Shown: positions 2,297-43,635 of the stretch, in pieces | How the letters are laid out: each line of letters begins with the position of its first letter | Numbering within the stretch: position 1 is the stretch's first letter | IMG/VR virus record: IMGVR_UViG_3300040801_004034 | Coordinates: 1 to 64,000 of that record | Reading direction: 5' to 3' (one strand) | Length of the DNA: 64,000 nt | Notes under the pieces: generated by a model | What the model was told of the DNA's origin: nothing | The model's database searches: none | What the model saw: only the letters and a program-made list of their open reading frames with translations | Program-made: the position numbers and the translations under genes

Positions 2297-3028
2297 ATGG
2301 CGACAAACACAAAATTAAATGATACATTCTGTAATAGAATAATCTATAATACATCATTTTCCCCAAAAGATGATATGTATATTTCATTCAGACTTGCATT
2401 TGATTATAATGCACTGGTTGATGAACAGAACCAATTCCAAATTCTTTCTGAAGAAGGTCAGGTATTTTACTTAGAGAATTTCTTTGATGCACGAACAGGA
2501 TTCATGATCTTTCTAGTAGATGGTTCATACCCGATTGATGAAATCAATGGAGAACCTGGGATCGGTTATTGTCTAGCTGCTACATTATCCTCAGCATTCA
2601 CAGAAGTGTCGCGACATATTATGTCGCTTGCATTTGATATAAACGGATTGTATGGTCAAAACGATACTTTTAAAAATTCTAACTCGTCTGGTACTACAAC
2701 ACCTGTCCAAAAATCTGTGACGATACGTCAGAAGACATTACAATCAGATTATATGTTTGTAACAAGTAAATCAATTGATACATTTTTTGAAGATATTACA
2801 CAAACAGAAAGTACATATGTTGATGTCCGTATAAGATTTAAAGACTTTTTAAACACCATTTATGTTGATCTTAGGTTACCAGATGAACTGGATTACAAAA
2901 ATGTATTTAAAGAGCGTACAGGATTTAACATTAACATTCTACCTACGAGAGTTAAACCAGGTTTATCGTATTCAGGTAATCTACCATTGTTTATACGCGA
3001 CTTAACGTATAGCGGAACAACTATTTAA
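2297..3028 (+). CDS. putative virion protein, legume-lectin/ConA-like beta-sandwich
   Basis: GFMIFL…G.G…SLAFDING…VTIR…VRIRF…GLSYS pattern; TAAATA 9 nt upstream. Confidence 0.5.
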   Translation: MATNTKLNDTFCNRIIYNTSFSPKDDMYISFRLAFDYNALVDEQNQFQILSEEGQVFYLENFFDARTGFMIFLVDGSYPIDEINGEPGIGYCLAATLSSAFTEVSRHIMSLAFDINGLYGQNDTFKNSNSSGTTTPVQKSVTIRQKTLQSDYMFVTSKSIDTFFEDITQTESTYVDVRIRFKDFLNTIYVDLRLPDELDYKNVFKERTGFNINILPTRVKPGLSYSGNLPLFIRDLTYSGTTI

Positions 3029-3831
3029 CTTTCAAGCTGCTCGATTCTTTTTGTAAGAGCTTTTACCTGCTCGACAAGAATTGGTATAACTTGAATATAA
3101 TCAATACCAAGCATTCCGTTGCTGTTTGTACTAACTGCTTCAGGTAGTATTTTTTGGACTTCTTGTGCTATAAAACCATATGACTGTCCCCGTCTTACAG
3201 CTTTATCATTCCATTCAAATGAAACACCGCTCAAATTACTTATTATGCTATTTGGATCAGAGATTGTTTCGATATTATTTTTAAGTCTACTATCTGAGCT
3301 ATAAAAAGCAACAATATCATTACATGAAATTATTGTATCTTCAGCTAAGATCGTACCATCAACTGCAAAATTCGTTTTACCTGTTAATGATTGTATACTT
3401 ATTGTACTCGCAGTCGGTGCAGTAAATGTCAGAGTACCACTTGCAGGGGTAGTGGCAAAAGGATTCCATGCATTGGTCGATTTACTTACTGTATGCGACC
3501 CGATAGACAATCCAGTATTTTGAACTACTAATGAAGCTGATGTTACTGAACCTGCAACAGCTGCGTTTGACAACACATCAAGCGATAGCATTGTCGCTGT
3601 TTTTGAAAATGAAGCATTATCTGAAACGTTAAGTGTGCTACCAATACTTGTAGCACCGGTCGTATTAAATGTACCGCTTACTGTAGCAGAGTTCGTACTC
3701 AAACTAAGAGCTGACGGACACCCAAGACCACTTGTTATGGGTTTTAAACTACTATCAATACTTGCGTTATCATCTGTCTTAAGCAGACCGTCATATGTAT
3801 TGTTAATTTGTTTTCCTTCGAGTGTTGCCAT
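3025..3831 (-). CDS. tail fibre-like protein with C-terminal intramolecular chaperone (peptidase S74)
   Basis: SSDSRLKNNI…GVSFEW…GFIAQEVQKILPEAV…IDY…LVEQVKAL. Confidence 0.8.
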   Translation of the reverse strand: MATLEGKQINNTYDGLLKTDDNASIDSSLKPITSGLGCPSALSLSTNSATVSGTFNTTGATSIGSTLNVSDNASFSKTATMLSLDVLSNAAVAGSVTSASLVVQNTGLSIGSHTVSKSTNAWNPFATTPASGTLTFTAPTASTISIQSLTGKTNFAVDGTILAEDTIISCNDIVAFYSSDSRLKNNIETISDPNSIISNLSGVSFEWNDKAVRRGQSYGFIAQEVQKILPEAVSTNSNGMLGIDYIQVIPILVEQVKALTKRIEQLES

Positions 3832-4544
3832 TAGATTTGTTCTTTAAGTGTTATGATTTCATTGTTAAGACGTTTTACCTCTTCAATAAGAACTGGTATA
3901 ATTTTTATATAGTCAACAGCAAGATAGCCATTATCACGTTCATGTACAGCTTGCGGGAATACTTTCTGTAACTCCTGTGCCACTACACCAGCTCCTATTT
4001 GATCCACGTATTCTGATTTTTCATTCCATGTGTATATGTAACCGTTTATACCTTCGATAATTTTTTGACTCTCAATAGGTTGTATATTATTTTTAAGTCT
4101 ACCATCTGAAGTATAGAATGCAACAATATCATTACATGAACGTATAGGACCAGTAGCAGTAATACTACCTGATGTCACAATGTTACCAGTATTGGTTATA
4201 GATGAGTTTACTGTTAATGCATTCGCAATTGTTGTTGTTGTCCCAGCTAATGTCGTTGTACCACCTGTTATAGTAACATTAAGCCCGGTTGTAGTAAGAT
4301 TGCTAGAATTAACATTAAATCCGCTCCCTGTAGATAATGATGTACCGATAACAGCTCCATTTGTTGCATTAATATCACCTGTCACGCCTAGACCACCATT
4401 TGGTTGATATATTGTGACTGATGATGAATTACCAAAACCATCTGTCAATAAAATACCACCGCTTGGTATAACTGCGTTATCACAGGTTTTAATAAGCCCG
4501 TGATAACTTTCTTTAATTACTAAATCTGTTAATGCTGTTGCCAT
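3831..4544 (-). CDS. tail fibre-like protein with peptidase S74 chaperone (paralog of 3025..3831)
   Basis: TSDGRLKNNI…GVVAQELQKVFPQAV…VDY…LIEEVK; N-terminus similar to the neighbouring gene. Confidence 0.8.
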   Translation of the reverse strand: MATALTDLVIKESYHGLIKTCDNAVIPSGGILLTDGFGNSSSVTIYQPNGGLGVTGDINATNGAVIGTSLSTGSGFNVNSSNLTTTGLNVTITGGTTTLAGTTTTIANALTVNSSITNTGNIVTSGSITATGPIRSCNDIVAFYTSDGRLKNNIQPIESQKIIEGINGYIYTWNEKSEYVDQIGAGVVAQELQKVFPQAVHERDNGYLAVDYIKIIPVLIEEVKRLNNEIITLKEQI

Positions 4545-4563
4545 AATCTATATTTTTACTTAA

Positions 4564-6457: not shown

Positions 6458-9400
6458 CTACGGGTTGTATGTTACAACATCACCATTGTGAATAACGATA
6501 CCGTCCTGATAGAAAACAACATTTGGATCATCAACAGGGTTAGCTGCAATAATATCAGATTCAATTGTTGATACACCATCAGTCTGAATAGTATCATCGA
6601 TGAACTCAAAAACAATATTACCGATCTGAATATTACTGTTAGCTCTAATTTGTTCGGTGAGGTACGCTTTTAACTGTTCTCTTGTTGCAGCATCAACATT
6701 TGAACGTTTGATATATATTTTAAGATCATTATTTTTAAATCCTGGTATATTATAATTGTAAAGATTACTGATTTGTTCAATATTATTACGTGTACCGGAT
6801 GGTATATCAAAGTTAATATCATCAATTCTTGTTTGTGCTAAATGTTTAAATAGAATCATATCATCTGATAATGTTCTATCATATAATGCGATATCGGATA
6901 TTGAACCATTATCACCGTAAAAGTGACTATTGTTAACAAATTTAGTAACAGGGTCATTTTTTATAGTTGGTACATTAAAGAATATATCCGGTGTGATTAT
7001 TCTATTCATTGAGAATAAATTAGGTGAGAATGATACTGTACCTAGTTTATATGTATCTTTATAAACATCTATTGTACCGTCGTTGATGTTAAAGTTAAAT
7101 GTAAACATCGAGCTTGTCTCTACTTCACCGAGCGGTAAAAGCAATTCGAGACCGTTTTGATCACCAGCACTCTCAACAGAGAACTGGGCATCCCAATAAC
7201 CGAACCCGTCTAGATCACCAGCTGTGAGTTCAGCCGGAGATGCTGAAAACTGAAACGTTGCTGTATTCCATAGAACGGTTATAAGTTCCGCCGATACAAA
7301 ATTATCAATATTCAATCTAAAATATAACTTATTCTGATAGTCTTTATATTTCTGTTCTATGTTATAAAAACCAACAGGGTTCTCAAAGAACTCTGGTAAA
7401 GCAGAATAACTTGTCTGTATTGTTGATAGCTGACCAGTTTCGAGATTAATTCTGTCAATGATTAGTTGATTCAAACTATTCGTTGAGAAGCTAAGAGCAT
7501 TGATACCTGTTTCATCTTTAATAAAATCGATATGCTTACCAGAAACAGCTGAAACAGATAAGTTGAATGATGATAAATAATCGCGTTCAGATGAGAATAC
7601 ATCTAGCTGCCCGGTACTTAATGATCCTGTTCGTGAATATGATTGTATAAACAGTTTATTATCATATGATCCAATACTGTAAATATCCTTTTCAGTAGCT
7701 GATAATGATTGCTGATAAAACCCACCATCTGTCTTACTAAAATAAATCAGCTTTGTATCGTGATATGCATATACATCATCTGTAATAAAATATGGTGTAC
7801 TTGCTGCATTAACACCAGTTAGCGATGTAATACTCACATCAGTCGATATAGGTATAAAACCACTTAACGATGAAAATAATATTTTGTCTGTATATGCTGC
7901 ACTAAGAGGATCTGGTGTGCTACTAAGAGAAAATGAATTCAAATTAAGTGTATAAAGAGCTGATTGTGGTGTTGCAAACGTCACGGCATTGTAACTATGT
8001 ATAACCCGTGACTTGTAACCACCTTGTATGAACGTGTTGTAAACTGAACTTGAATCACTTACCACATCGATAACTTCACCATTAAAGCCAAGCTTTATAA
8101 ATGTTTTAATACTACCTAATTCACCATAAACAACAAAGTCATTTCGCTGATCCAGAAATAGAACATCTATGATTGTATCAACTTGCGGTACTTGAATTGT
8201 TCTTATAAATTCCAATTTTGAATTATAAAAATGTAAATTGGTTGAGTCTGGGATAACAATAAATGGTGTAAAATAGAAGTCGTCCAATACTGCATACCCG
8301 TCGTTGTAATAGTTACCGAATATTTGATAACTTTGGAACGGTTTTGTATTATCGGAGTTTAGCTTAAATGATATGCTGTAATTTCTATTTGTGAGTGTAT
8401 CAAGATCGAATGAATCATAACCGCTTGATGCAAAAACAAGACTGTTTTGTTTTACAGATACCGCACCATCATCAATCGTCTTTACATCAAACGAATCTTT
8501 CAGAAGGAGAGATGATATCGAATCAATCATAGTGTTGATGTATTTATTACCTATACGTTCGTAGAAATATGTACCTTGTGGTTCAAATACCATATTACTC
8601 TTAACATCAAAGAATAATTCATCTTGTAAGCTATTCTGTATTAGATATTGTTCAGCTTGCGAGAGTGTCTCAAACTGTGGTATTTCATTCGATGAAATAG
8701 CATCAATAAAGGTAATTGATGTAGGGTTATAATATCTATCATACCACACACCTGGTTGTGTTTCATCTTCCGTATTTAACCATGAGCATAAAACAGTACC
8801 ATTATTTTCGACGATTGTATCAGGGATACCTTGCTCCTGTAATACAAACACATCATTATCTTGTGTTAGCATATAGGTATTATCTTGAAAGAGCAAATCG
8901 AAATCAATATTCGGATACGGTTCGTTTTTCGTTTTATTGTTATCTAAAAGTTTGAATACTTTATCACTGAAGTATGGACTCTGGCCCCCATATGCACCGC
9001 AATTGACAAGATTGGTGTCATTTATATTAACATGTGAAAAAGGATACAATGTATCTGGTAAAACAAATTTTGTTATTTTATCAGCTTTGAATATATACTC
9101 TTTTGTGTAGAAATTGTAACTGAATGCAAGTGGTTCATTTACAATTTCTCGCGCACCAGCATTTACAATCGATGAATACAATCTTTGATTTTGCGTATGA
9201 TCTGTTTGTAACAGTGGATTTACATAAGCATTGTTTGAAATATGATTACGAAGATTGAAAAACGTCATTTGTGTTTCAAAACCTGTTGTGGTCGGTGTAA
9301 GTGCTTCGTATGGGTAATACACTAGAAAGTTATATTCCTGTTCAATAAGAGTTTCATCTGAAACAGTATATACATTATTGGTTGTATCATAATATACGAA

Positions 9401-10120
9401 GTTATCAGTAAACTTGTTCTCGATTATGAAACCAGGTTGCGGTTCAATCTTTACAAATGCATTATTGATCGCTTGTATAGACGGTGATACACCATAAAGT
9501 CTTCCACTTAAAGGAGATACTATATTAAAGATGCTGCTTATTGTGTTTGTAAACGTTATAATATTACTATCTACATCATACACATAATTGAAAATGTTCT
9601 TACCATCTCTTTTATAAAGAGGATATTGTGATATCTGTACAAACTTAATTTCACCACCAGGTTCTGGTATTACCATTTCTTTTTCCACGAAGTCGAAGAT
9701 CTTAACCTTACATGTCAAATCATCTAAAAAGTCTATAACAACTGTCTCGTTTGCATTAATACTAGACGCAAGTATAACATCGACATCCGCATTCGTATTT
9801 TGCAAACTATAACGTAAAACATTTACTGCGGATGCAGGACTAAGACCAGCAAATGTTAGTGATGTAGATAAATCCTGATTGGCAATATTCTCATTTGTCT
9901 TTTCCTGATCGATAAAATCTTTCGGTTGTTGCTTACCAGTTAAATAGTTAACTGTATAATTTTTTGCAAGAACATCTTTAACATTACCGAGTATATTATA
10001 CACACTGATATTATTACCTTGAATAGTGCGCAACTGAATTTTCTTAAGGATCGAATCAGGATCACTTAATGTAAATTCAACAGGTAGAAGATCGGTATAA
10101 AGTTTCTTTAGTATTGCCAT
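6458..10120 (-). CDS. large virion structural protein (LamG-like/propeller, baseplate-associated)
   Basis: 1220 aa, beta-rich; C-terminal GSISDIALYDRTLS is LamG-like; TAAATA 7 nt upstream. Confidence 0.55.
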   Translation of the reverse strand: MAILKKLYTDLLPVEFTLSDPDSILKKIQLRTIQGNNISVYNILGNVKDVLAKNYTVNYLTGKQQPKDFIDQEKTNENIANQDLSTSLTFAGLSPASAVNVLRYSLQNTNADVDVILASSINANETVVIDFLDDLTCKVKIFDFVEKEMVIPEPGGEIKFVQISQYPLYKRDGKNIFNYVYDVDSNIITFTNTISSIFNIVSPLSGRLYGVSPSIQAINNAFVKIEPQPGFIIENKFTDNFVYYDTTNNVYTVSDETLIEQEYNFLVYYPYEALTPTTTGFETQMTFFNLRNHISNNAYVNPLLQTDHTQNQRLYSSIVNAGAREIVNEPLAFSYNFYTKEYIFKADKITKFVLPDTLYPFSHVNINDTNLVNCGAYGGQSPYFSDKVFKLLDNNKTKNEPYPNIDFDLLFQDNTYMLTQDNDVFVLQEQGIPDTIVENNGTVLCSWLNTEDETQPGVWYDRYYNPTSITFIDAISSNEIPQFETLSQAEQYLIQNSLQDELFFDVKSNMVFEPQGTYFYERIGNKYINTMIDSISSLLLKDSFDVKTIDDGAVSVKQNSLVFASSGYDSFDLDTLTNRNYSISFKLNSDNTKPFQSYQIFGNYYNDGYAVLDDFYFTPFIVIPDSTNLHFYNSKLEFIRTIQVPQVDTIIDVLFLDQRNDFVVYGELGSIKTFIKLGFNGEVIDVVSDSSSVYNTFIQGGYKSRVIHSYNAVTFATPQSALYTLNLNSFSLSSTPDPLSAAYTDKILFSSLSGFIPISTDVSITSLTGVNAASTPYFITDDVYAYHDTKLIYFSKTDGGFYQQSLSATEKDIYSIGSYDNKLFIQSYSRTGSLSTGQLDVFSSERDYLSSFNLSVSAVSGKHIDFIKDETGINALSFSTNSLNQLIIDRINLETGQLSTIQTSYSALPEFFENPVGFYNIEQKYKDYQNKLYFRLNIDNFVSAELITVLWNTATFQFSASPAELTAGDLDGFGYWDAQFSVESAGDQNGLELLLPLGEVETSSMFTFNFNINDGTIDVYKDTYKLGTVSFSPNLFSMNRIITPDIFFNVPTIKNDPVTKFVNNSHFYGDNGSISDIALYDRTLSDDMILFKHLAQTRIDDINFDIPSGTRNNIEQISNLYNYNIPGFKNNDLKIYIKRSNVDAATREQLKAYLTEQIRANSNIQIGNIVFEFIDDTIQTDGVSTIESDIIAANPVDDPNVVFYQDGIVIHNGDVVTYNP

Positions 10121-10130
10121 CTATTTTTAT

Positions 10131-10646
10131 TTAAGTGTTGGGTGAAATTGCTGTGATAAACATATTACTATTCGTGTCTGAGAAGTTAATTACAGGAGCA
10201 GGTTTGCCGTTTACATTTGTCACAGTTACATTATCGATAAAAACTGATCTGTCTATCTGATTGACATCTGCTGCAAAAACGGATAAAAACACAGTTGATG
10301 TAAACCCGTTAAGATACATAAAATCTATTCTCCCAATTGAAATCGTATCTGTATCGAACGGGTTGTATGTATGTTCAATAGTTTCGGGTATAGAATATTC
10401 GTATAAAAATTTTGAATTATTAAAACCTAAACTACTATTAAAATACTCTGTTTTTCCATCCCCATAATCGGCAAAAATTTTGTAAATAGTTGTGTTATTT
10501 GCGCCGCCATCATCGTTTGATACACCTGATAGCCCAAATATAAAGTTTGTAATACCTGAATATGAAATTGTTTTAACAGTTGACACACTACCACTTGAAG
10601 GGAAAGGAGCAGAAAGCTGCACAGTTTTTGTATCATCAAGTAACAT
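10131..10646 (-). CDS. PKD-like structural protein
   Basis: DYGDG…HTY motif; TAAATA 5 nt upstream. Confidence 0.55.
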   Translation of the reverse strand: MLLDDTKTVQLSAPFPSSGSVSTVKTISYSGITNFIFGLSGVSNDDGGANNTTIYKIFADYGDGKTEYFNSSLGFNNSKFLYEYSIPETIEHTYNPFDTDTISIGRIDFMYLNGFTSTVFLSVFAADVNQIDRSVFIDNVTVTNVNGKPAPVINFSDTNSNMFITAISPNT

Positions 10647-10660: not shown

Positions 10661-13042
10661 TTATAACCCGAAACTACCATTACCACTGAGATATACGACA
10701 TCACCGCTCAATGAAACAGTTGTGTAACTATCTGTAAATGCTGAAACGATGTATGTAGTTGTTGTATCGTAATAGTTTTCAGGTACAATTATGTCGTTTG
10801 ATTCAATTACAAACTCATTATTGACAATTTTAAATAACAAAGAATGAATATAAGAGTTGTCATTCAAGTCTACGAATTGCGTCACTATAGAAAATACATC
10901 AAATAATGAGTTATACGCAAATTTCGATGTCTTGATACGTTGTGGTCTTGCTTCAATATCAATATTAAAGTTATCTATAAAGTAATCAATAGGTTGCGTA
11001 TCTCTACTGATAACTGTTTTTGATCTTTTTGTAATAGTATCATACTGGTATACTTCAAAATAATATACTGTGTTAGTCGATGAAAATTGTGGGACAACTG
11101 TGATAGCACCGATATAAATTGAGTTATCGACGTGAATTGATTCAGTATAGCTTGTAAGAAGCGCATCACTCTCCTCATCGAATCGTTCGAAAAGAAGTTC
11201 TTGTGAAATTGATGGGTTAAACACACCATCATATACAAATGAGTCAATTAAAGTATAATTTGTTGTATTAATGATAAACGTTGTATCGATACATGTTATA
11301 TCCCTGATTTCATTGTTCAATTCATCGTACAACTGCGTATTGTTGTTATATTTCGAAAATACATCTATGAATGCACCGCTGAGTGGCTGAAGCTCGTTTG
11401 TTGATATGTTTACAACATACGACTGTTTTGGTATACCAGGTAAGTCTCTATATGATGTTTCATTAGGTTCAGATCCTGGACTTCGTTTGTTTTGCGTTGT
11501 TGTATTTGCTGATTGGAATATATCACGATCGGTAACAAAAGATGTTATATCGTCAAACTGCTTTATACCTGTTGTATCATTTACAAATAATAAAAACTGA
11601 TTACCGAAAATATCAGATGTTACTTTATTGATATACCCTTTATTAACAATTTCTTCATATTTATACTCAAACCCGCTTAATGTATTTGGTGTTAAACGCT
11701 TTTGCTCAATTGAATCATATGAATAAAAATTATGATCGTCTTTACTACTCTTAACAAGCGACTTACCATACCCAGATGATTTGTTTTTGTATACATCATT
11801 AGTTAGGTAAAATACATAAGGTGATTGCGGTACGTTTTTTGATAAATTTGCAATATTACCGAAACCGTTTGGATCAGGGTATGTATATGTTGTATTTGGC
11901 TGTAAATTTGTGTTGAGTTGCGCACCGAATGGACCTTTCATTTTAAGCAATGAAAAGTTTGTTGGTTTAAAATATAAACCTACTTCGCGCTCATATTTTC
12001 TTTTATCTGTTGGTATTACAAGAGACGATGCATTGTTAATATTCAGTATATTACTAACAGGGTTTTCCGCTTCGAACAACACACCTGATACGAATTGCAT
12101 CTCACTGTTAGTAGAAAGATAAAAATAATCAGTACCGAAGTAATTACGTAAAAGCTGCTTTTCGTATATTATTTTCAGTTCATCATCATTCGTCTGGTTA
12201 AAGTTGATATAATCGATATTCTGTAATTTATCAGTATCGAAATCTGCAGTAACTTCACTTACCGATAAAGGGCTACCATCATCAATTGTAATTACAACAT
12301 CACCATCTGTGAGTTGTATACCTCTCCCATTAATTAAATCTGTAAAATACTGTGCTTCGTTTATAAACATTTCAGCACTAAGCAGGTTTGTATTAGCTGA
12401 AAGTTTATTGTCACGCTTTACTAAACCAGAATAGAAATCTTCAAGTTTATTATATGGTATATCATAATAATCATTATATACGTCATAAGCTTCTTCAATA
12501 GCAACAGATGTATTTAACTGAACACCTGTTAAGACAGCTGTATCTGTATCACCTTTTTCAAGAAATGTTAAGATACGGTCTTTAACGAATTGTTCAGTGT
12601 TCTCGAAACTACCACGATTTTTTAAAATACGAACGTTTTTAATTGTTTCATCTCTATCTCGTTTAATCTCTCTACATATTGTTTTGAGACGTTTTACGAA
12701 AAATGGAATTGCAACACTGAGCGATTCCGGATCATCAAAATCAACAGTTCTAATGATACGAGCTTGTTCTGGAGATGTATATGTATACAACAGCTCTTTG
12801 AACATATCAATGTACTGCTCCCTCACTGAGACATTATATGACTCTCCTCTTTCTACAGTTATACTATTCCATTTAACAATATAGGATTCATAGAGCTTAA
12901 AATTCTGAACATCATCATCCAGCAATTGTGTGTAATTGAGAAATTCTAAAAATGAGAAAGGCTTTTGTAAGTCCTGCTTTTCATCAGTTAAATCGTTCGT
13001 TATACTATTATAAATTAGTGCTGTTATCTTTGTTGTTGACAT
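10661..13042 (-). CDS. virion structural protein (baseplate cluster)
   Basis: 793-aa ORF within the late baseplate operon. Confidence 0.55.
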   Translation of the reverse strand: MSTTKITALIYNSITNDLTDEKQDLQKPFSFLEFLNYTQLLDDDVQNFKLYESYIVKWNSITVERGESYNVSVREQYIDMFKELLYTYTSPEQARIIRTVDFDDPESLSVAIPFFVKRLKTICREIKRDRDETIKNVRILKNRGSFENTEQFVKDRILTFLEKGDTDTAVLTGVQLNTSVAIEEAYDVYNDYYDIPYNKLEDFYSGLVKRDNKLSANTNLLSAEMFINEAQYFTDLINGRGIQLTDGDVVITIDDGSPLSVSEVTADFDTDKLQNIDYINFNQTNDDELKIIYEKQLLRNYFGTDYFYLSTNSEMQFVSGVLFEAENPVSNILNINNASSLVIPTDKRKYEREVGLYFKPTNFSLLKMKGPFGAQLNTNLQPNTTYTYPDPNGFGNIANLSKNVPQSPYVFYLTNDVYKNKSSGYGKSLVKSSKDDHNFYSYDSIEQKRLTPNTLSGFEYKYEEIVNKGYINKVTSDIFGNQFLLFVNDTTGIKQFDDITSFVTDRDIFQSANTTTQNKRSPGSEPNETSYRDLPGIPKQSYVVNISTNELQPLSGAFIDVFSKYNNNTQLYDELNNEIRDITCIDTTFIINTTNYTLIDSFVYDGVFNPSISQELLFERFDEESDALLTSYTESIHVDNSIYIGAITVVPQFSSTNTVYYFEVYQYDTITKRSKTVISRDTQPIDYFIDNFNIDIEARPQRIKTSKFAYNSLFDVFSIVTQFVDLNDNSYIHSLLFKIVNNEFVIESNDIIVPENYYDTTTTYIVSAFTDSYTTVSLSGDVVYLSGNGSFGL

Positions 13043-13045: not shown

Positions 13046-14545
13046 TTATGATGTTAAAAGTTGTGTTCGTGTTAGTATTATATTAAGCAGCAGCTCATCG
13101 ATGATACCACCATCATCAGCAAACTGAGATATTGATGAAAGATTACTTAATTGCGTACTCGGATTATTGAAATCTACAAATTCGTTTATAAATGTACCAT
13201 CTATAGTATCGTTAAACTCATAGAACTCATAAAAATCATCGATTCGCTCAGGTTGTTGAGCATCATCGTATGTCTGATGTACCAATCTACCACCATCTTC
13301 TAATGCAAGCACATCGATGTTGTCGTTCGTATATGATTGAAGCTGAAAATTATGCGTTGTGTTGAAAACATTTGGTAGAATAAGATTCCATCCCCAATAC
13401 TTTGAGTAAGCAGAAAGAGGAAATGCTCCTGTTCCTTCATCACTATAACGTAAGTCAAATGTCTGGGGATGAACAGGGTATATTACTTTGTATTTTTCAC
13501 TAAATTTTTCGTATGCAACAATAGGTTTACCTGACACACCTGTGTATAATGTTGTTGTTAGTATTGGAAGTTTATCTCCTAAATTTGTACCGAATGTACT
13601 GCTGTTCTCAAAACCTTTTGAGTCGAAATTATACTGATATGCATTTTCACTACTATGTATTTTGGAAAGATTTAGTGAACCTATATCACAAATACGTCTA
13701 ATTGATGGTGGTAGTGATGAATCGAGTTTGTTATATGTAACCCCGAGCATATCTAAGCTTGATTGAAACTGGTCAATGTTACTTGTTGATATATCAGTTT
13801 CATTCATTGAAAAGTTTGATATCTTTTCATATATTAATGTACCAAGATCCTCTGAACTCGTCTCACCGTCCCCTACAATTTGACCTAAAAATTTATCAAA
13901 GAAATTCGGTTTATCAATTAGTATATTTTGAAATATAAGATCTTTGTATGTCTGTTTCTGATCGTGATCTTCATTTATCTTACGAATGCTATACTTACCT
14001 TCAGCAGGGTAGATATTGAACACTGATGACTCACCTGAAACAGATGAGATAGGCGTTTGCATTGTTGCAATTAGTTTAACATTATCATAGACATTATCAA
14101 CAGTAAAATAACCTTTATACACACCTTGCTCGACGATGCCATCAAATTTATCTACAACATTAATCGGAATTTGATTGTTGTTTGCATCTACACATGAAAG
14201 TGATATACCGTATAAGTTTGTTGAGTCATCAGTTAAATAGAAATTAGGAGCAGTCTTTACAGGAAAATCATTTTCTGTTTTTCCTCGAATAACAAAATAT
14301 ATCTTCTGACCCTTGTAGTATATTTCATTAAGTTCGAATGATGTATCATTATAACCTATTCCATCCACACCGTTTGTTGAAAATACAAGCTTTTCAATCG
14401 GTAACTCATCATTAGTGATATCAAACGTTATCGTTTCAGAAATATTGTTTAATACACTTTTGGTAGACGGGTTAGTATAAAAGTTCGATTCAGTATCATC
14501 AAAACCCTTTAGATCAAAATTTCCATAGATGGTTCTTAAGCTCAT
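13046..14545 (-). CDS. virion structural protein (baseplate cluster)
   Basis: 499-aa ORF; TAAATA 7 nt upstream. Confidence 0.55.
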   Translation of the reverse strand: MSLRTIYGNFDLKGFDDTESNFYTNPSTKSVLNNISETITFDITNDELPIEKLVFSTNGVDGIGYNDTSFELNEIYYKGQKIYFVIRGKTENDFPVKTAPNFYLTDDSTNLYGISLSCVDANNNQIPINVVDKFDGIVEQGVYKGYFTVDNVYDNVKLIATMQTPISSVSGESSVFNIYPAEGKYSIRKINEDHDQKQTYKDLIFQNILIDKPNFFDKFLGQIVGDGETSSEDLGTLIYEKISNFSMNETDISTSNIDQFQSSLDMLGVTYNKLDSSLPPSIRRICDIGSLNLSKIHSSENAYQYNFDSKGFENSSTFGTNLGDKLPILTTTLYTGVSGKPIVAYEKFSEKYKVIYPVHPQTFDLRYSDEGTGAFPLSAYSKYWGWNLILPNVFNTTHNFQLQSYTNDNIDVLALEDGGRLVHQTYDDAQQPERIDDFYEFYEFNDTIDGTFINEFVDFNNPSTQLSNLSSISQFADDGGIIDELLLNIILTRTQLLTS

Positions 14546-14562
14546 TCACTATTATTTAAGGC

Positions 14563-15300
14563 TTAATCCTCGTAGTAATAGAACGAACCGTAACCAATTG
14601 TCCCAAGGAAGAAAGAATCGATCGTTTGAGTTGTTGAGTAGAAAATAAATCTCTCTTCAAGCTTACCGTATATATTAACAGACGTTGTTTGGACACTATC
14701 AATAATTTCAAAATCATCAGAAACATCATTCAGAAAGAAGCAGCTCTTTTTAAATTGAAAATCTGGCATATTTTGATATTTTTTTGCAGTAATAAGTTCA
14801 CGTTCATTTTTATCAACTGATAAATTAATTTTATAACCATTAGCTGATAGTGTTCTTGAAGCTGTATCGCTATTGATTCGATAAACATTAACCTTCACAC
14901 GAGATTCACTCTTTCGTTGTGTTGGTTCTCCATCTATTGTAAATGTTACACGGTCTGGAATAGATGCACGAACAGTAATTTCTACAACATTTTTTGATTT
15001 GTAAAATTTACCGTCTTTATCAACAACTATAGCTGTTATTGTATACTTACCGGGTGATGTATACACATGTGATGGTTTTGCATCATCTGATGTCGTACCA
15101 TCACCAAAGTCTACATAATAATTGTTATCACTAACAAACAACCCAGTGTTATCAAAATCTAGTTCAATACTTATCCTACCTATATTACCGGTAAAAGTTT
15201 CAGTAACATCATCACCATTTCTATCGAAAATCGTTATACCAACCGGTAACAATTCTAAATTATCATAATTATTCTGCTGTATGTTTTTAACTTTGCGCAT
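14563..15300 (-). CDS. PKD-domain structural protein
   Basis: YYVDFGDGTTS…PSHVYTSPGKYTITAIVVD is a canonical PKD motif. Confidence 0.75.
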   Translation of the reverse strand: MRKVKNIQQNNYDNLELLPVGITIFDRNGDDVTETFTGNIGRISIELDFDNTGLFVSDNNYYVDFGDGTTSDDAKPSHVYTSPGKYTITAIVVDKDGKFYKSKNVVEITVRASIPDRVTFTIDGEPTQRKSESRVKVNVYRINSDTASRTLSANGYKINLSVDKNERELITAKKYQNMPDFQFKKSCFFLNDVSDDFEIIDSVQTTSVNIYGKLEERFIFYSTTQTIDSFFLGTIGYGSFYYYED

Positions 15301-19490: not shown

Positions 19491-19538
19491 TCTGATACTG
19501 TTGTACAAACCAGTTTATAACCATAAATAAATGTAAGT

Positions 19539-20000: not shown

Positions 20001-20003
20001 TTT

Positions 20004-33414: not shown

Positions 33415-33969
33415 TTAATCTTGTGGTGATGTTTCTTTAAAGTAGTGATATGTCACTGTTACATCAAACTCAACGATTTCACCATCACCAGTTTGATCAT
33501 AATCAATTTCACCAACTGATTTAATAGCAACGCCAACAAGTTGGTATTGTTTTGCTCGGTCAAGTTGTTTATCTAACAGAACAAGATCGATTACACTATC
33601 TGGCTTTGGGGCAAAGTAAGCACCTGTTGATGTTTCATCATCAAATGTTGCTCTCGATGCTCGTAAAAAAGCTTCTCTTAAATTGTATTGTTCATCACAG
33701 CGAAATCTAATAACATATGCATCACTACCAGGGTATTTAGCTACACCAGGTACATTGAAAGCTAGCCCCATGAATGGTACTGCTTGAGATGCATTATCTC
33801 TTGCTGGTAATTTAGCTGTTGTTGCATATACTAGCTCATCTTCACCGAATTGAAGACCAATATCACCACCTAAGTCAATATTGAGCACTCTGAATAAATT
33901 CTTACGTGCAAAATCTTTATCTTGAAGTTGGGTATAGAAACCTTGTATATTTTGGGAAGTCTGTGCCAT
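33415..33969 (-). CDS. gp19: tail tube protein gp19
   Basis: ARKNLFRV, AKLPAR, VPFMG…PG, VGEIDY, EIVEFDVTVTYHY. Confidence 0.85.
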   Translation of the reverse strand: MAQTSQNIQGFYTQLQDKDFARKNLFRVLNIDLGGDIGLQFGEDELVYATTAKLPARDNASQAVPFMGLAFNVPGVAKYPGSDAYVIRFRCDEQYNLREAFLRASRATFDDETSTGAYFAPKPDSVIDLVLLDKQLDRAKQYQLVGVAIKSVGEIDYDQTGDGEIVEFDVTVTYHYFKETSPQD

Positions 33970-33983: not shown

Positions 33984-34178
33984 TCAACCAAGTATAAGAC
34001 CGCTGCTGTTTGTTTGTCTGCTATCCAATAAAATTTGTTTTATTGTTATATCAGTTTTATCATACCAAGTATTGTTTATTTTATACCCTAGTGAAGTTAC
34101 CTCATCAATAGTACCTTCTTGATCTATTGTGGAGAATTTACTTTTATACTTTACTGTTTGTCCTTTTTCTACTATCAT
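33984..34178 (-). CDS. small hypothetical protein
   Basis: ORF fills the gap; likely start MIVEKGQ overlapping the upstream stop. Confidence 0.5.
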   Translation of the reverse strand: MIVEKGQTVKYKSKFSTIDQEGTIDEVTSLGYKINNTWYDKTDITIKQILLDSRQTNSSGLILG

Positions 34179-34723
34179 AATGTTGGAATTGTTAGAACAG
34201 CTACCCACGATGTACTTGCTGGTATTGTAATACTACTTGCATTATTATTTCTAATGTACATCTCAAACGCTGATGGTGCTGTGACATATGCATTAATATC
34301 AAGCCCGCTCAAACCACCGGTTGCACTTAATGTTATAGCAACTGCAGCAGTTGTATCAAATTCTTTCAACTCTGTAAAAATAGCACTAACACTATCTAAT
34401 GTAAATGTTGTATTATATAAAGCTCCTGATGCAACTGTAATAGAACCAGGGTTAAAAATAAAATCAAAATATCTATCCTGAACTGTATTGAGTTCACTGA
34501 TTGCTGTCAATACTTGCTGAACTGTGAGTTTGTTTAATTCAAGATCAGCAGATATAGTATCTACAGTTGATGTTATCGTCTCTACGGCTTCCAGTCTTGT
34601 ATTTACAAATGTATCGTATGATATACTATGTGACGTATTTGTTGAAACATCAACAACGTAAATTAGATCACTTCCATCGATTGCGGTTCGTTGTGTTAAG
34701 TCTGTAAGTTTCTTGTCTGGCAT
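34175..34723 (-). CDS. short fibre/decoration-like protein
   Basis: N-terminal KKLTDL…DLIYVVD motif followed by a coiled coil; TAAATA 5 nt upstream. Confidence 0.55.
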   Translation of the reverse strand: MPDKKLTDLTQRTAIDGSDLIYVVDVSTNTSHSISYDTFVNTRLEAVETITSTVDTISADLELNKLTVQQVLTAISELNTVQDRYFDFIFNPGSITVASGALYNTTFTLDSVSAIFTELKEFDTTAAVAITLSATGGLSGLDINAYVTAPSAFEMYIRNNNASSITIPASTSWVAVLTIPTL

Positions 34724-34825: not shown

Positions 34826-37219
34826 TTATGATGTACCGTTTATGATTTCATCAAAATTAGCACCTGTCTGGGTTGCCAAGAAGTTGACTAAGATAAATTC
34901 AGCTGCTCGAACTGGCTTGATATAAATATCAATCACTAGTTCATTCTGATCAATAACATCATTTGTGTTGTTACGTTCATCACAAATGATTCGGTAATCG
35001 TAAACACCTTCAGTATTCTTAGTAAGTTTGAAGATTGGATCAAGTACGTTGACAACTCGTGTTCGTGTAATCAATGTATTCGGTTCGAACACAAAGTACT
35101 TAGCTGTACGTCTTGTTGCCTTTTCTAACCATAAGAATAATCTACGAACATTAATTCTATCAAATGCACTTGGTTTTGCTTGCATTGTCTTCTGACCGAA
35201 TGTTACAAAACCTTCTCCTGGGAAGAATGCAACCGGGTTAACAGAAATTTTGTATAACTGATCACGTTGCTTCTGTTTAGGGTAGATTGCTAGATCATTA
35301 ACACCTGAAACTAGACCTCTTGTGAAACCTGCTGGTGCATACCAAGGCTGGAAGTTATCATCTGTGTTAGCCATCATAGCTGCCATTGTACCTGACATCG
35401 GTGCCCAGAACTGATCGTCTAGAACACTGTCATAAACCTTACCCCAGTTACCATATGTAGCTGCATAGCTTGTGTTAATTAAACTCATTACAGCTTGGAT
35501 TGGTTTAAGAACGTTTAATGAGAAGTTCTTTGATTTATCTTCAAGAGTCAAGAAATTGCTTCCTTGAACGAAGAACTGTCTTGGAAGATCACCAATGAAC
35601 ATATGATCTTTACGACGTTTTTCAGCAAAATCTGAGAAGCGTTGAAAGATCGTATTGTAATCTGCTCTGAAGGCTTTAGCTTCGTTTGAAATCTCAAGAA
35701 TATTAGATTTGTAGAACCCATCAATAGCACCAACTGCCATTGTATCGTCGAAATATTTCGTACCTGTTGTACGCTCTGTATATTCTGCTGTCGCGTTAAT
35801 AGTGGTAAGACCACCATCAACAGTGAGATCGATATCAAACATATCAATGTTTTCAACACTATCGAATAATCTATCAAGCTTGCGTGGAATAGAACCGAGT
35901 TTCTTTGTCTTAGGATTTGCTTCAGCATATGCACCGAGAGCATAGAGATTATCTGCTGCACCTAATGTTGCTGTTGCTTCAATATAAACATCCTTGATTG
36001 TCTCAGCTTGAGCTGATGTTGTTGCACCTAATGAACTGCTCAATGATACGATATTTGTATTAGCTGCAGATACATTAGCGAAACGAGATGATGTGAAACG
36101 CACCTTCTTCGTTGGCACTCCATTAATATCTAACCATGTGCTACCATTTTTGCTATTAACATATTCATTTGTCATCACAACAACATTCGGTGATGCATTT
36201 TCTCGTGTTTCAATTGAATAGCTGATTGCTGGACCACCATTTTGGTTGTTGATTTGTCTATGTGTATCAAATGAACCAACATATGTTTCTGAAATATTGT
36301 ATGCAAGCTTAATTGTATCAGAGGTGAATGGTGATTGGCTTAATTTAACAACACCGAGCGTTACTGTATCATCAAACTGATTCGATGAAATATCAAACAG
36401 GCTCACATTCTCCATAACTTCAGATATGCTATCATCACTTGAATCAAATGTATTAACTGTTGTTGCAGTATTATCAGAGATTGCTGATAGTGCGAAGTCA
36501 AGTCTTGAACTTGGAAGTGATGTGTATGCTGTTGTAAAGCCTGCTGATTGTGTAACAGTCTTAACACTGAGAATACCATCGAAATCTGTCGCAGGGTTTA
36601 GATTTGTGTTATCAATAGCACCAATATAAAAACCTTGAAACTTCTGATCAATTGTAGTCTGCCCTTTGTTAAGTACAATCATTGCTGCACCGCTTAAGTC
36701 TTGAACGCTATTGAATGATGTTTTCGGTGTATTTCCCCACTGGAAGTATTGAGGATTTTTACCAAGAATACCATAATATTCATCACGTGTAAGTTCAACG
36801 TGTGTTGGTTCACCAAGAATGTATGTCACATCTGTTGATTGTTCATCATACTCAGTAAGTGCTGTACCGAAGTTACTTGATAGTGTACTAACCGCACTAC
36901 ATGGATATGCAAGAGCACCATAATTGCTACCAAAACCAGCTCCTGTATCTTCACCGTATGGTAAGCGATATGTTAAAATATTTGCTGGTGAGTTGAAAAG
37001 TGGTCGAACTGAGTGATAAAAATATCTTTCAGCTGGTGTAGATGGTCTACCGTAAATTTGTTCAAATTCACTCTGGCTTGTAACTTGTATAACCTCATCA
37101 GTTGGCCCTTTAGATGCGAAACCTGGGATTAAAACGTTGGTGCCTGTTGGTAGATTTGCTCTAAGGGATAAATCAATCTCTCTCACCTCGACTCCGGGGC
37201 TCTGTATTTGTCTGCTCAT
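34826..37219 (-). CDS. gp18: tail sheath protein gp18
   Basis: SPGVEVREIDL, PWYAPAGFTRG, SAFDRINVRRLF, FEPN, CDERNN, IKPVRAAEFI. Confidence 0.97.
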   Translation of the reverse strand: MSRQIQSPGVEVREIDLSLRANLPTGTNVLIPGFASKGPTDEVIQVTSQSEFEQIYGRPSTPAERYFYHSVRPLFNSPANILTYRLPYGEDTGAGFGSNYGALAYPCSAVSTLSSNFGTALTEYDEQSTDVTYILGEPTHVELTRDEYYGILGKNPQYFQWGNTPKTSFNSVQDLSGAAMIVLNKGQTTIDQKFQGFYIGAIDNTNLNPATDFDGILSVKTVTQSAGFTTAYTSLPSSRLDFALSAISDNTATTVNTFDSSDDSISEVMENVSLFDISSNQFDDTVTLGVVKLSQSPFTSDTIKLAYNISETYVGSFDTHRQINNQNGGPAISYSIETRENASPNVVVMTNEYVNSKNGSTWLDINGVPTKKVRFTSSRFANVSAANTNIVSLSSSLGATTSAQAETIKDVYIEATATLGAADNLYALGAYAEANPKTKKLGSIPRKLDRLFDSVENIDMFDIDLTVDGGLTTINATAEYTERTTGTKYFDDTMAVGAIDGFYKSNILEISNEAKAFRADYNTIFQRFSDFAEKRRKDHMFIGDLPRQFFVQGSNFLTLEDKSKNFSLNVLKPIQAVMSLINTSYAATYGNWGKVYDSVLDDQFWAPMSGTMAAMMANTDDNFQPWYAPAGFTRGLVSGVNDLAIYPKQKQRDQLYKISVNPVAFFPGEGFVTFGQKTMQAKPSAFDRINVRRLFLWLEKATRRTAKYFVFEPNTLITRTRVVNVLDPIFKLTKNTEGVYDYRIICDERNNTNDVIDQNELVIDIYIKPVRAAEFILVNFLATQTGANFDEIINGTS

Positions 37220-37274
37220 ATACTATTATTTATATATTGCGGGATATTTTATTAGTACATGCTTAAATAATTTT

Positions 37275-40721: not shown

Positions 40722-40761
40722 TTTTATTACTTAATCGAACAAGAGTGTTTCCAGCGCAACA
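40660..40761 (-). mobile_element. atypically short split intein N fragment (33 aa)
   Basis: CCAGNTLVRL…TIEELYERL then stop; block A only. Confidence 0.88.
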
Positions 40762-42460: not shown

Positions 42461-42494
42461 ATACTCTACATTTCACGATGTAGAGTATTTTTTT
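42461..42494 (+). terminator. intrinsic terminator
   Basis: ATACTCTACAT-TTCACG-ATGTAGAGTAT followed by a T run. Confidence 0.8.
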
Positions 42495-42508
42495 GTATAA
42501 ATATAGTT

Positions 42509-42853
42509 GTGGATAAGTTTGATAAATTTTTCAATGATAGACAATCATCGACATCACTCGGTAATATAAAGCAACCGAACTCACCTGACTACTATAAACG
42601 TCATGAAAACAAACACATGAAAGGTATCGGTAAGGATGTAGCTGATTATGCTAAGAAGAGTGGAAACACATCAGAACGAAAAATAGACAATATTAAAAAA
42701 CGTGGTGGTCAAACTGCATTAGCTCCACAAGATGTACAATATGTTCAAAAGACATATGTCTTGGATCTCCCTCAACTAGGTCAGTCTAAGCAGCTTGGTA
42801 ACACAGGTGTAACTATCACAAACAACAATAACACATATTTCATATCTAAATGA
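42509..42853 (+). CDS. hypothetical late protein
   Basis: GTG start 5 nt after TATAAATA. Confidence 0.65.
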   Translation: MDKFDKFFNDRQSSTSLGNIKQPNSPDYYKRHENKHMKGIGKDVADYAKKSGNTSERKIDNIKKRGGQTALAPQDVQYVQKTYVLDLPQLGQSKQLGNTGVTITNNNNTYFISK

Positions 42854-43635
42854 GTTCAATAGATTTCAACAACTGCTATCCTGGTATGGTTCAAGATGAT
42901 GAGACATGCTTCAGATTTACTGACAAATCGGTACAAGAGAATGAACGTACTATTTATGATAATGCTTGGAGAGAAGAGATAAACAAGTACGGCATTCAAG
43001 TAAACTACTATGTAAATACATTCACTACACTTTCAGCAGATAATATCTATGGTGAACAAACAACACAAGTATTTTCTGAACCGCGTACGATTAAGATCGG
43101 TGCTGAACTTAATGATGATGCTGTGACATTGTCGAGATTTGGATATGAAAGTGATGATCTTATATCTGCTATGATACATATCAAAACGTTCGAAACAGTA
43201 TTCGGATCATTAAGATCTGTCTACAACAAACAGAATAGTTTGATAGAACCTAAAGCAGGTGATGTATTTCAACTCACGGAATATGGAGATGATAGACCGG
43301 GAGGACGTCAAGCAAAATATTTTGAAATTACAGAACGTCTTGATCAGGCAATAGCTGAAATTAACCAGCTTCAAGGACATTTCGTGTTTAGAATCAAAGC
43401 TAAACGTCTTGATTATTCATATGAACCTGGCATTCCATTCAACAGTGTTGTTGATGGTGTTTCTGGTAACCAACAAATTTACGAAGATACATTTACTGGT
43501 AGATTATCTGGTGGTACACATCCAGAAACAGAAGGTAAGAAAGAGAACTACGGTCAATATGACGCTGACAAAAACAGCTTCAATATATTTGATATGGATT
43601 CAGAAGATCGTGGAGACCAATACGGTAGATATTAA
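42850..43635 (+). CDS. gp14: neck protein gp14-like
   Basis: E.I.KYG..V.Y…IYGE…LSRFG…PKAGD…FEIT…YSYE. Confidence 0.75.
   Translation: MSSIDFNNCYPGMVQDDETCFRFTDKSVQENERTIYDNAWREEINKYGIQVNYYVNTFTTLSADNIYGEQTTQVFSEPRTIKIGAELNDDAVTLSRFGYESDDLISAMIHIKTFETVFGSLRSVYNKQNSLIEPKAGDVFQLTEYGDDRPGGRQAKYFEITERLDQAIAEINQLQGHFVFRIKAKRLDYSYEPGIPFNSVVDGVSGNQQIYEDTFTGRLSGGTHPETEGKKENYGQYDADKNSFNIFDMDSEDRGDQYGRY

Follow-up and report, generated by a model that had tools for sequence, protein, structure and literature searches.

Several systems are known or have been proposed in which short serine-containing motifs or phage-encoded sugar enzymes bring glycans to proteins, cell envelopes or DNA. The bacterial autotransporter heptosyltransferases TibC and AAH, which are related to GT9 enzymes, are cytoplasmic and O-glycosylate many serines, not threonines, on beta-rich surface proteins. 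They possess an iron-binding cysteine cluster, form a dodecameric ring and have genes paired with their autotransporter substrate, and the sites mapped in TibA are serines followed by glycine or alanine, QNS-GG and NTS-AA (PMC4358343). In mycobacteriophages of the Che8 type, phage-encoded glycosyltransferases reportedly decorate the phage's own virion proteins inside the host cell, with glycans on the major capsid proteins (Freeman et al. 2023, as cited in PMC11256854); a three-residue sequon is not known for that system. The general O-glycosylation system of the Bacteroidota acts in the periplasm on exported proteins and uses the sequon D-(S/T)-(A/I/L/V/M/T), in which a hydroxyl residue is followed by a small or aliphatic one. 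In large aquatic T4-like phages, the pelagimyophages, glycosyltransferase genes are interleaved with tail fibre genes in host-recognition clusters and have been interpreted as modifiers of the host O-chain (PMC7029224), while T4 itself encodes alpha- and beta-glucosyltransferases that act on hydroxymethylcytosine in DNA and are located among early and replication genes.

Here we describe a short motif in an uncultured T4-like phage that is known only from a microbial-mat metagenome. The stretch of DNA that was analysed (the window) comprises positions 1 to 64,000 of the IMG/VR record IMGVR_UViG_3300040801_004034; coordinates beyond it refer to the whole genome. A first-pass annotation, made by eye, had noticed that a hydrophobic residue followed by Ser and Ala, Gly or Ser recurs in the baseplate, fibre, sheath and neck proteins, and had proposed a phage O-glycosylation system that coats the virion at this sequon and draws on the phage's Rml-type sugar genes and two glycosyltransferases. 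The observation is confirmed: every instance listed is present where it was placed, and the enrichment, whose quantification had been proposed as a test, is strong. The interpretation is only partly supported, and there is no direct evidence that any serine is modified. Tail and neck proteins that carry the motif, together with some that lack it, are as follows.

3025..4544, minus strand: two paralogous fibre-tip proteins with a C-terminal fibre/chaperone-type domain; one L-S-G site.
6458..10120, minus strand: 1220-aa outer baseplate/fibre protein with four L-S-[A/G] sites (205, 740, 753, 807) plus VSAVSG and FVSA; its homologs lie in the baseplate operons of relatives.
10131..10646, minus strand: 171-aa tail-module protein with two L-S-[A/G] sites.
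10661..13042, minus strand: 793-aa baseplate-module protein, the most enriched one, with six L-S-[A/G] sites against 0.31 expected.
13046..15300, minus strand: two baseplate-module proteins (499 aa and 245 aa), each with one L-S-A site at a position shared with relatives.
15287..17101, minus strand: gp6-like inner baseplate wedge without an L-S-[A/G] site.
18285..21314, plus strand: variable fibre cassette (a 401-aa fibre with YALSAET twice, then 153-aa and 436-aa proteins) with five L-S-[A/G] sites; absent from the closest relative, L015.
33415..33969, minus strand: tail tube protein without a site, as are the tube-family paralogs 32491-33339 and 38051-38674.
34175..34723, minus strand: 182-aa protein next to the sheath gene, with TLSATGGLSG.
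34826..37219, minus strand: tail sheath; its L-S-[A/G] sites (176, 245) lie in the variable N-terminal part and none in the conserved C-terminal domain.
42850..43635, plus strand: gp14-like neck protein with two L-S-[A/G] sites plus ISA and VSG (four against 0.35 expected); two positions are shared with relatives.

In the 30 proteins of the tail block, per-protein shuffles gave 65 occurrences of h-S-[AG] (h, a hydrophobic residue) against 31.5 expected (z 6.0) and 27 of L-S-[AG] against 7.5 (z 7.1), whereas the controls h-T-[AG] (1.17), the mirrored [AG]-S-h (1.02) and h-N-[AGS] (1.06) were flat. An unbiased scan of all 8000 tripeptides ranked LSA first, LSG third and SLS fourth. In the full set of tail and neck proteins (34 proteins, 12,837 aa), L-S-[A/G] occurs 38 times against 9.4-9.8 under 15-, 30- and 60-aa window shuffles (z 9.2-9.6), and the highest of 500 shuffles reached 21. 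After collapsing neighbours within 10 aa, 34 sites remain, and without the repeat protein 220182-221120 the count is 31 against 8.5; a first-order Markov expectation is 21. The codons at the sites are mixed, with TCN and AGY for Ser and five Leu codons, so the signal resides in the protein and not in a DNA motif.

The unit first proposed needs to be narrowed, since Phe and Tyr at -1 are not enriched and Ile and Val only weakly, and the signal is a property of the tail and neck rather than of the whole virion. Split by class, the counts are 29 against 6.6 in fibre and baseplate proteins, 4 against 1.3 in the sheath/tube block, 5 against 0.9 in the neck, 1 against 0.9 in the head and 25 against 21.1 in all other ORFs. 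Neither the major capsid protein, which is also exposed, nor the portal is enriched, and hence the notion of a coated virion is not supported. All 38 sites lie in outer or distal proteins, at a modest density of about one per 230 aa of outer protein, and none were found in gp6, the gp25/53-like proteins, the tube-family proteins or the 26024-33339 block. That the serines themselves are surface exposed is inferred from this distribution alone, since the AF2 model of 10661-13042 reached a pLDDT of only 55.8, too poor to map the sites.

The enrichment extends to the whole clade, which is deeply diverged. All 57 related metagenomic loci show it (789 against 205), as do two complete relatives, G001 and G006, in which the head proteins again carry no excess (1 against 1.0 and 2 against 1.1, respectively). 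In 294,693 aa of clade proteins Leu at -1 is enriched 3.8-fold (L-S-[AG] 3.79x) and Ile and Val 1.5-fold; at the centre Ser is enriched 3.8-fold and Thr, which is flat in this genome, 1.8-fold, but Asp (1.11x) and Asn (1.08x) are not; at +1 the values are 5.0-fold for Ala, 2.9-fold for Gly and 1.9-fold for Ser, and the mirrored motif is at 0.94x. This specificity argues against helix capping, generic turns and compositional patchiness. At a helix N-cap or hydrophobic staple Asp and Asn are about as favoured as Ser and Thr and the motif is present in all protein classes, but L-[DN]-[AG] occurs 9 times against 16 expected in the tail set and non-structural proteins are not enriched. The sites are concentrated in fast-evolving fibre proteins that have no orthologs between relatives; where orthologs exist, sites are partly conserved and partly gained at new positions in each lineage. 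Outside the clade the signal is lacking: T4, the cyanophage S-WAM2, phiM7, CP21, HTVC008M (11 against 10.7) and other distant loci have observed-to-expected ratios of 0-1.6 despite homologous folds, which calls for a clade-specific cause.

The sugar-related enzymes named by the first-pass annotation are present. Together with an associated acetyltransferase, they are encoded in the window as follows.

133..1050, minus strand: predicted GT9-fold (GT-B) glycosyltransferase flanking the fibre/baseplate module; an accessory gene within the clade.
50934..53491, minus strand: RmlB-like, RmlA-like and RmlD-like genes (6-deoxyhexose nucleotide-sugar synthesis, no RmlC) inside the replication module; not conserved in the clade.
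60997..61665, minus strand: small GT-A glycosyltransferase (PF13712, HDD motif), whose true start is probably Met31 of ORF 60997-61755; conserved across the clade and co-oriented with the helicase gene.
63324..63845, minus strand: GNAT acetyltransferase; in relatives it sits directly beside the GT-A, with a glutamine amidotransferase-domain gene (genome 64156-64824) on its other side.

The link to the Rml genes is not supported. RmlB (50934-51896) matches PF16363 at 3e-66 and PF01370, RmlA (51874-52641) matches PF00483 at 3.7e-60 and the RmlD-like 4-reductase (52631-53491) matches PF04321 at 2.9e-19, but there was no match to the RmlC 3,5-epimerase family PF00908 in the whole genome at E <= 0.1, while control genomes matched. 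The product may be another 6-deoxyhexose, or the reductase may be bifunctional. The RmlA family is absent from G006, which has the same enrichment, and from the 88%-complete relative G002; the Rml genes are therefore dispensable and would at most supply one optional sugar.

The glycosyltransferases are the candidate enzymes, although none has been tied to the motif. The GT-A is present in 5 of 5 relatives tested and absent from 5 of 5 non-enriched T4-like genomes, a co-occurrence that is confounded by phylogeny. A GT2 at genome 106109-106948 is conserved in both complete relatives and heads a glycan-enzyme island that differs between them, being followed by different extra glycosyltransferases, a methyltransferase or a pyruvyltransferase; here there is a GT2+GT10 fusion (106945-108537), which is not conserved in the clade. 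A further GT2 lies inside the baseplate operon of G001. The AF2 model of 133-1050 (pLDDT 94.6) matches only GT9 enzymes among its top 30 PDB hits, namely WaaF (1.6e-10), 3tov, TibC (about 1e-6) and WaaC among them; a profile search hits WaaF weakly, and 5 of 62 homologs match PF01075. The gene flanks the fibre/baseplate module in this genome and in L018 and L077 but is absent from G001 and G006. A prediction of its complex with the adjacent fibre protein gave no answer.

The most likely reading, to which we assign a probability of roughly 0.4, is that L-S-[A/G] is a short linear motif kept under selection on the exposed parts of the tail, i.e. the outer baseplate, the fibres, the outer sheath domains and the neck proteins gp14 and gp15, and that it is the acceptor site for an O-linked modification of the serine, most plausibly a sugar. 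The modification would be added in the host cytoplasm, before or during tail assembly, by a phage-encoded glycosyltransferase: either one of the two conserved in the clade, the GT-A or the GT2 at 106109-106948, or a lineage-specific enzyme placed at or inside the tail module, such as the GT9-fold enzyme here or the GT2 in the baseplate operon of G001. The analysis itself establishes the enrichment, its specificity, its distribution among proteins and lineages, and the presence, fold and conservation of the enzymes, whereas it is by inference that the serine is modified at all, by which enzyme and with what. An extended version is unlikely on present evidence, namely that the whole clade uses L-S-[A/G] as a conserved sequon at which a conserved priming glycosyltransferase O-glycosylates the exposed surfaces of tail, baseplate, fibres and neck in the cytoplasm, and that a hypervariable island of further glycosyltransferases, methyl- and pyruvyl-transferases then diversifies the glycan between lineages. 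This would amount to a tail-specific glycan coat with a fixed address and a variable cargo.

The alternative that survives best, only a little short of even, is that the sugar genes serve other ends and merely happen to occur with the motif. The Rml genes, the variable GT2/GT10/pyruvyltransferase island and the GT9-fold enzyme would in this view remodel the host LPS or capsule to block superinfection, as proposed for marine T4-like phages, and the GT-A would act on DNA or nucleotides. The Rml genes and the GT-A indeed lie among replication and nucleotide genes (gp32, clamp, primase, helicase, NT5C, a dGTP diphosphohydrolase-like gene and a deoxyribosyltransferase-like gene), and the position of the GT-A next to the replicative helicase suits an early function such as DNA or nucleotide modification; the Rml genes and the GT2+GT10 fusion are not conserved, and the best PDB fold match of 133-1050 is the LPS heptosyltransferase WaaF. 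No route to a hydroxymethyl-pyrimidine acceptor was found: the only ThyA-family gene best matches true thymidylate synthases (1.4e-56), a score by which a dUMP hydroxymethylase cannot be told from a thymidylate synthase, and no TET/JBP and no C5-methyltransferase were detected. A GT2 inside a late baseplate operon is hard to reconcile with a purely host-directed early function, and this alternative does not explain the motif itself.

A structural cause is a serious rival, though somewhat doubtful. L-S-[A/G] could be a favoured building block of the folds used for fibres and outer decoration domains in this clade, for example a small-residue packing position in trimeric coiled-coil or beta-helical shafts and at strand-to-turn junctions, inherited and spread by duplication and module exchange among tail proteins without any modification. 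The serine is flanked by Leu and a small residue, and some sites sit in heptad-like, 7-residue runs (LSANTNLLSAEMF, LSGDVVYLSG and LSAETYALSAETY here, LSGQFAQLSAFAQSLSS in a relative) or in P-x-L-S-G contexts that resemble common fibre motifs, both typical of structural repeats. The repeat protein 220182-221120 carries NYLSGAID repeats, several sites are positionally conserved h-x-G columns, the Markov model already explains about half of the excess, and the head and inner parts, which lack fibrous domains, are not enriched. However, homologous and analogous tail and fibre proteins of T4, the cyanophage, phiM7, CP21 and HTVC008M show no enrichment, there is no extended sequence context and no overall periodic spacing, and non-fibrous proteins (the sheath outer domains, gp14 and the gp15 extension) are enriched too. 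The centre accepts Ser and weakly Thr but not Asp, Asn, Gly or Ala, and only 7 of 38 sites have a partner at +/-7 and only 7 a nearby Pro.

It is unlikely, albeit possible, that the motif is recognised by a clade-specific factor other than a glycosyltransferase, such as a tail or fibre assembly chaperone, an enzyme for another serine modification (phosphorylation, acylation, phospho-sugar or phospho-alcohol addition) or a host factor, with the phage sugar genes being unrelated to it. The specificity, distribution and clade restriction fit equally well, and the GNAT and glutamine amidotransferase-domain genes are conserved next to the GT-A, but no kinase and no chaperone specific to these proteins was identified, and glycosyltransferases are the only recurring enzyme class found at or inside tail modules in this clade. 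Chance or composition can be rejected, for although the motif was picked after seeing the sequence and structural proteins are rich in Ser, Gly and Ala, the excess persists under composition-preserving and local shuffles, tops the unbiased scan and is replicated in two divergent complete genomes and 57 loci, while mirrored and neighbouring motifs are flat.

How, then, does this phage compare with the described systems? As in T4, glycosyltransferase genes sit among early and replication genes, but the enzymes are GT-A and GT9-fold, not the T4 families, and no hydroxymethylase was detected by scores that cannot tell one from a thymidylate synthase. As in pelagimyophages, glycosyltransferases accompany the tail fibre genes, yet the pelagimyophage HTVC008M lacks the enrichment, and the present clade is distinct, giving no VrlC match and including many structural proteins without a PHROG family. 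The Bacteroidota sequon differs in its Asp at -1, which is not enriched here (D-S-[AG] 0.88x), and in its periplasmic setting, whereas phage tails assemble in the cytoplasm. Phage-encoded virion glycosylation has its precedent in the mycobacteriophages, an unrelated lineage with a different host, and the present phage likewise encodes several glycosyltransferases; there, however, the glycans are reported on the major capsid proteins, while the putative acceptor motif described here is in excess on tail and neck proteins and not on the head. The resemblance to TibC rests on the predicted GT9 fold of 133-1050, the preference for Ser and the Ala or Gly at +1. Leu rather than Asn or Thr precedes the serine, the phage enzyme is about 90 residues shorter (305 against about 400 aa) and the proposed substrates are phage tail proteins, there being no autotransporter; moreover, the gene is accessory in the clade whereas the motif is universal.

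The record to which these 64 kb belong is 221,292 bp long, is rated 100% complete by CheckV and comes from a microbial-mat metagenome; with about 34% GC it is a distant member of the T4 superfamily. Within the window we recognised gp6-like and gp25/53-like baseplate proteins, fibres, three tube-family proteins, the sheath, a gp14-like neck protein and the large terminase, and a replication block with gp32, clamp, clamp loader, primase, helicase, an RNase H-like exonuclease, NT5C and dUTPase. The open reading frame at 54212-54943 was considered as a possible glycosyltransferase, but it is the sliding clamp. The major capsid protein, portal, protease, gp13, gp15 and a gp5-like hub protein are encoded outside the window. 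GenBank phages hold no close relative, the best matches being 35% identity over the C-terminal sheath domain and 25% over gp6.

Several core genes are interrupted by mobile-element ORFs: the clamp loader gp44 is in two pieces around an endonuclease ORF at 22026-23006 (21311-23625), the large terminase is in pieces with small ORFs between them (38653-41562), the helicase is followed by intein- or endonuclease-like ORFs (58091-61030), and a homing endonuclease on the opposite strand lies between the sheath and a tube-family gene (37137-38054). Elsewhere in the genome, at 125.5-143.2 kb, lies an array of 39 tRNA genes that includes an amber-suppressor-type tRNA (anticodon CTA) and a tmRNA-like gene with the tag GENQLMAA; ARAGORN listed no tRNA-Ser. 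In the window, upstream of most start codons (e.g. those of 6458-10120, 15287-17101, 34826-37219 and 57178-58056) an A/T-rich box like TTAAATAA or TATAAATA lies 6-10 nt before the ATG, and there is no Shine-Dalgarno sequence. This box may be a translation-initiation context, or a very short leader after a T4-like late promoter. Since a TTAAATAA-like box precedes most genes of all classes, structural and non-structural alike, T4-type late promoters could not be used to time the expression of the sugar genes.

The first-pass annotation had reported a dense recurrence of hydrophobic-Ser-small tripeptides in the outer virion proteins; all of its examples are present, and the observation holds. When each protein was shuffled on its own, the 30 proteins of the tail block held 65 h-S-[AG] tripeptides (h, hydrophobic) against 31.5 expected (z 6.0) and 27 L-S-[AG] against 7.5 expected (z 7.1), whereas the neighbouring motif classes were flat (h-T-[AG] 1.17, mirrored 1.02, h-N-[AGS] 1.06, h-A-[AGS] 0.92). 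A blind scan of all 8000 tripeptides put LSA first, LSG third and SLS fourth. Phe and Tyr at position -1 are not enriched, so the real unit is L-S-[A/G], with weaker Val and Ile. The codons at the sites are mixed, with both Ser codon families and five Leu codons in use, which rules out a DNA-level motif and places the signal in the protein. On the complete tail and neck set (34 proteins, 12,837 aa) 38 sites were observed against 9.4-9.8 expected under 15-, 30- and 60-residue window shuffles (z 9.2-9.6), while a first-order Markov expectation is 21. Local compositional patchiness is rejected by these window shuffles and by the flat mirrored motif. Internal repeats are likewise rejected as the sole cause, because 34 of the 38 sites remain after merging neighbours and the count is 31 vs 8.5 without the repeat protein at genome 220182-221120. 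The latter is a 312-aa fibre-like protein with 18-residue repeats (NFNLQTATDNYLS[AG]xID) that sits at the far end of the record and would be adjacent to the window start if the genome is circularly permuted.

The distribution of the motif among protein classes is uneven.

L-S-[A/G] tripeptides observed and expected, by protein class
Fibre/baseplate: 29 vs 6.6
Sheath/tube block: 4 vs 1.3
Neck: 5 vs 0.9
Head (capsid, portal, protease, scaffold): 1 vs 0.9
All other ORFs of 100 aa or more: 25 vs 21.1

Within the tail, all 38 sites lie in outer or distal proteins, and there are none in gp6, the gp25/53-like proteins, the three paralogous tube-family proteins (32491-33339, 33415-33969 and 38051-38674) or the 26024-33339 block that sits where T4 keeps its hub genes. 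In the sheath the sites lie in the variable N-terminal part, and in gp15 they lie in a C-terminal extension beyond the Pfam domain. This is a property of the outer tail and neck and not of the whole virion. An AF2 model of the 793-aa protein 10661-13042, on which the sites were to be mapped, reached a pLDDT of only 55.8, and the exposure of the serines themselves is inferred. A 123-aa protein at genome 101463-101834, preceded by TATAAATA, carries four [LV]-S-A sites and has no family match; it may be a small virion decoration or fibre protein.

The same signal is found in relatives. The protein 10661-13042 has metagenomic homologues at 29-40% identity, encoded by 68 IMG/VR loci. In the ORFs of 150 aa or more of 57 such loci L-S-[AG] occurs 789 times against 204.9 expected (3.85x, with every locus between 1.8x and 6.6x), compared with 1.5x for [LVI]-T-[AG] and 0.94x for the mirrored motif. 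A second sub-clade, with 41% identity in gp6, gives 3.9-5.1x. Two complete relatives, here called G001 and G006, were analysed whole. In G001 the tail/neck homologues hold 21 vs 7.2, the head 1 vs 1.0 and other homologues 11 vs 8.3; in G006 the corresponding figures are 14 vs 5.8, 2 vs 1.1 and 10 vs 7.8. In both, the strongest excess is in large tail-module ORFs that have no orthologue in the query, and blind tripeptide scans of their tail sets again put LSA, LSG and LSS in the top six. Orthologues share some sites (gp14, sheath column 251) and gain others at new positions in each lineage, and shared ancestry alone therefore does not explain the excess. Other T4-like lineages lack it, so that it cannot be a generic property of T4-like tails.

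L-S-[A/G] observed/expected in other T4-like lineages
T4 (two regions): 1.15 and 1.63
T4 annotated tail and fibre proteins: 10 vs 7.9 (1.26)
Cyanophage S-WAM2: 1.38
phiM7: 1.43
Campylobacter phage CP21: 0.58
Distant IMG/VR loci: 0-1.2
Pelagiphage HTVC008M: 11 vs 10.7

The specificity of the motif was examined in 294,693 aa of clade proteins. At position -1 Leu is enriched 3.8x and Ile/Val 1.5x, with the others at about 1; at the centre Ser is 3.8x, Thr 1.8x, Asp 1.1x, Asn 1.1x, Gly 0.9x and Ala 0.9x; at position +1 Ala is 5.0x, Gly 2.9x, Ser 1.9x and Val 1.8x. No further context stands out apart from a weak Pro/Gly/Ser/Thr preference two residues before the serine, and neither an extended motif nor a global periodic spacing was found. 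Some sites do sit in 7-residue runs or in P-x-L-S-G contexts in fibres, but these account for only 7 and 7 of the 38 sites. The preference for a hydroxyl side chain, without Asp or Asn, argues against helix capping and generic turns, and the Asp/Asn results also reject the Bacteroidota sequon. The restriction to one clade argues against a universal structural cause.

The genome encodes the following sugar genes, the functions of which are inferred from sequence or predicted fold.

50934-53491: RmlB-like, RmlA-like and RmlD-like genes inside the replication block
60997-61665: GT-A glycosyltransferase (PF13712) with an HDD motif and a probable start at Met31
133-1050: glycosyltransferase of predicted GT9 fold, flanking the fibre genes
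genome 106109-106948: GT2 glycosyltransferase, the first gene of a glycan-enzyme island (genome 106109-109291) with a GT2+GT10 (fucosyltransferase-like) fusion of 530 aa at genome 106945-108537 and a polysaccharide pyruvyltransferase

There is no RmlC in the genome, and the RmlA family is present in G001 but absent from the complete G006 and from G002, an 88%-complete relative. Both lack it yet show the enrichment, so the Rml set is not tied to the motif. The GT-A is present in 5 of 5 relatives at 40-56% identity, and in three of them it sits in the fixed block glutamine-amidotransferase domain, GNAT, GT, helicase. It is absent from five non-enriched T4-like genomes and has 424 relatives in IMG/VR. 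A search for phages outside the clade that carry the GT-A, which would have allowed an independent test, found none among 50,697 GenBank phages, and the 80 best IMG/VR hits were all at 44% identity or more and were taken to be clade members. The GT2 is conserved in G001 and G006, but relatives keep this first gene and swap the rest: it is followed by the fusion and the pyruvyltransferase here, and by other GT2s and an FkbM methyltransferase in the relatives. G001 in addition carries a GT2 inside its baseplate operon, between the homologue of 6458-10120 and a 1039-aa protein with six sites. The gene at 133-1050 flanks the fibre genes here and in two relatives but is missing from G001 and G006. 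Its product is confidently predicted (pLDDT 94.6) to fold as a GT9 enzyme, with WaaF, a Veillonella GT9, TibC and WaaC making up the top 30 PDB matches. A prediction of its complex with the fibre-like repeat protein 220182-221120 gave no answer.

Overall, the enrichment is real, strong, specific and clade-wide, and it calls for a clade-specific cause acting on exposed tail parts. The interpretation of the first-pass annotation, that a phage O-glycosylation system coats the virion at this sequon, is only partly supported: neither the link to the Rml pathway nor the idea of coating the whole virion finds support. An O-linked modification of the serine by phage glycosyltransferases is the best single explanation, to which we give a probability of roughly 0.4, and it is unproven. 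What the analysis establishes is the excess of the tripeptide, its residue preferences and its confinement to certain proteins and to one clade, together with the presence and conservation of the enzyme genes; that any serine is modified, and that these glycosyltransferases act on it, is inferred. The main rival, a clade-specific structural habit of outer tail domains, is somewhat less likely but far from dismissed. The GT-A does keep company with purine-nucleotide enzymes, and an early, DNA-related role cannot be excluded either. A dATP/dGTP diphosphohydrolase N-domain (PF18909; 61658-61990), a nucleoside 2-deoxyribosyltransferase-like gene (PF15891; 62837-63322) and an IMPDH/GMP-reductase family gene (1055-2062) together hint at replacement or modification of a purine in the phage DNA. 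The only ThyA-family gene best matches true thymidylate synthases, although these scores do not tell a dUMP hydroxymethylase from a thymidylate synthase, and no TET/JBP and no C5-methyltransferase was found; no acceptor for DNA glycosylation is therefore evident.

If L-S-[A/G] is an acceptor motif, modified sites could be predicted from sequence alone in hundreds of environmental phage genomes, judging from the relatives of the conserved GT-A alone. It would also point to a tail-specific glycan layer that could affect adsorption, stickiness, resistance to proteases or recognition by hosts, and it would give a new reading of the many glycosyltransferases found among the fibre genes of aquatic T4-like phages. 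Even if the cause is structural, a tripeptide enriched four-fold, specific to one clade and confined to outer tail proteins, is an unusual signature that could serve as a marker of exposed tail parts.

Among described phages, the moraphage paper (PMC12619734) was judged not to concern this lineage, and the pelagimyophages (PMC7029224) are also a different one. Glycosylation of a phage's own virion has so far been shown in very few phages, and we know of no short sequon for it. Among the PDB matches of the predicted GT9 enzyme at 133-1050, TibC is a cytoplasmic protein heptosyltransferase that modifies Ser, not Thr, in QNS-GG and NTS-AA (PMC4358343).
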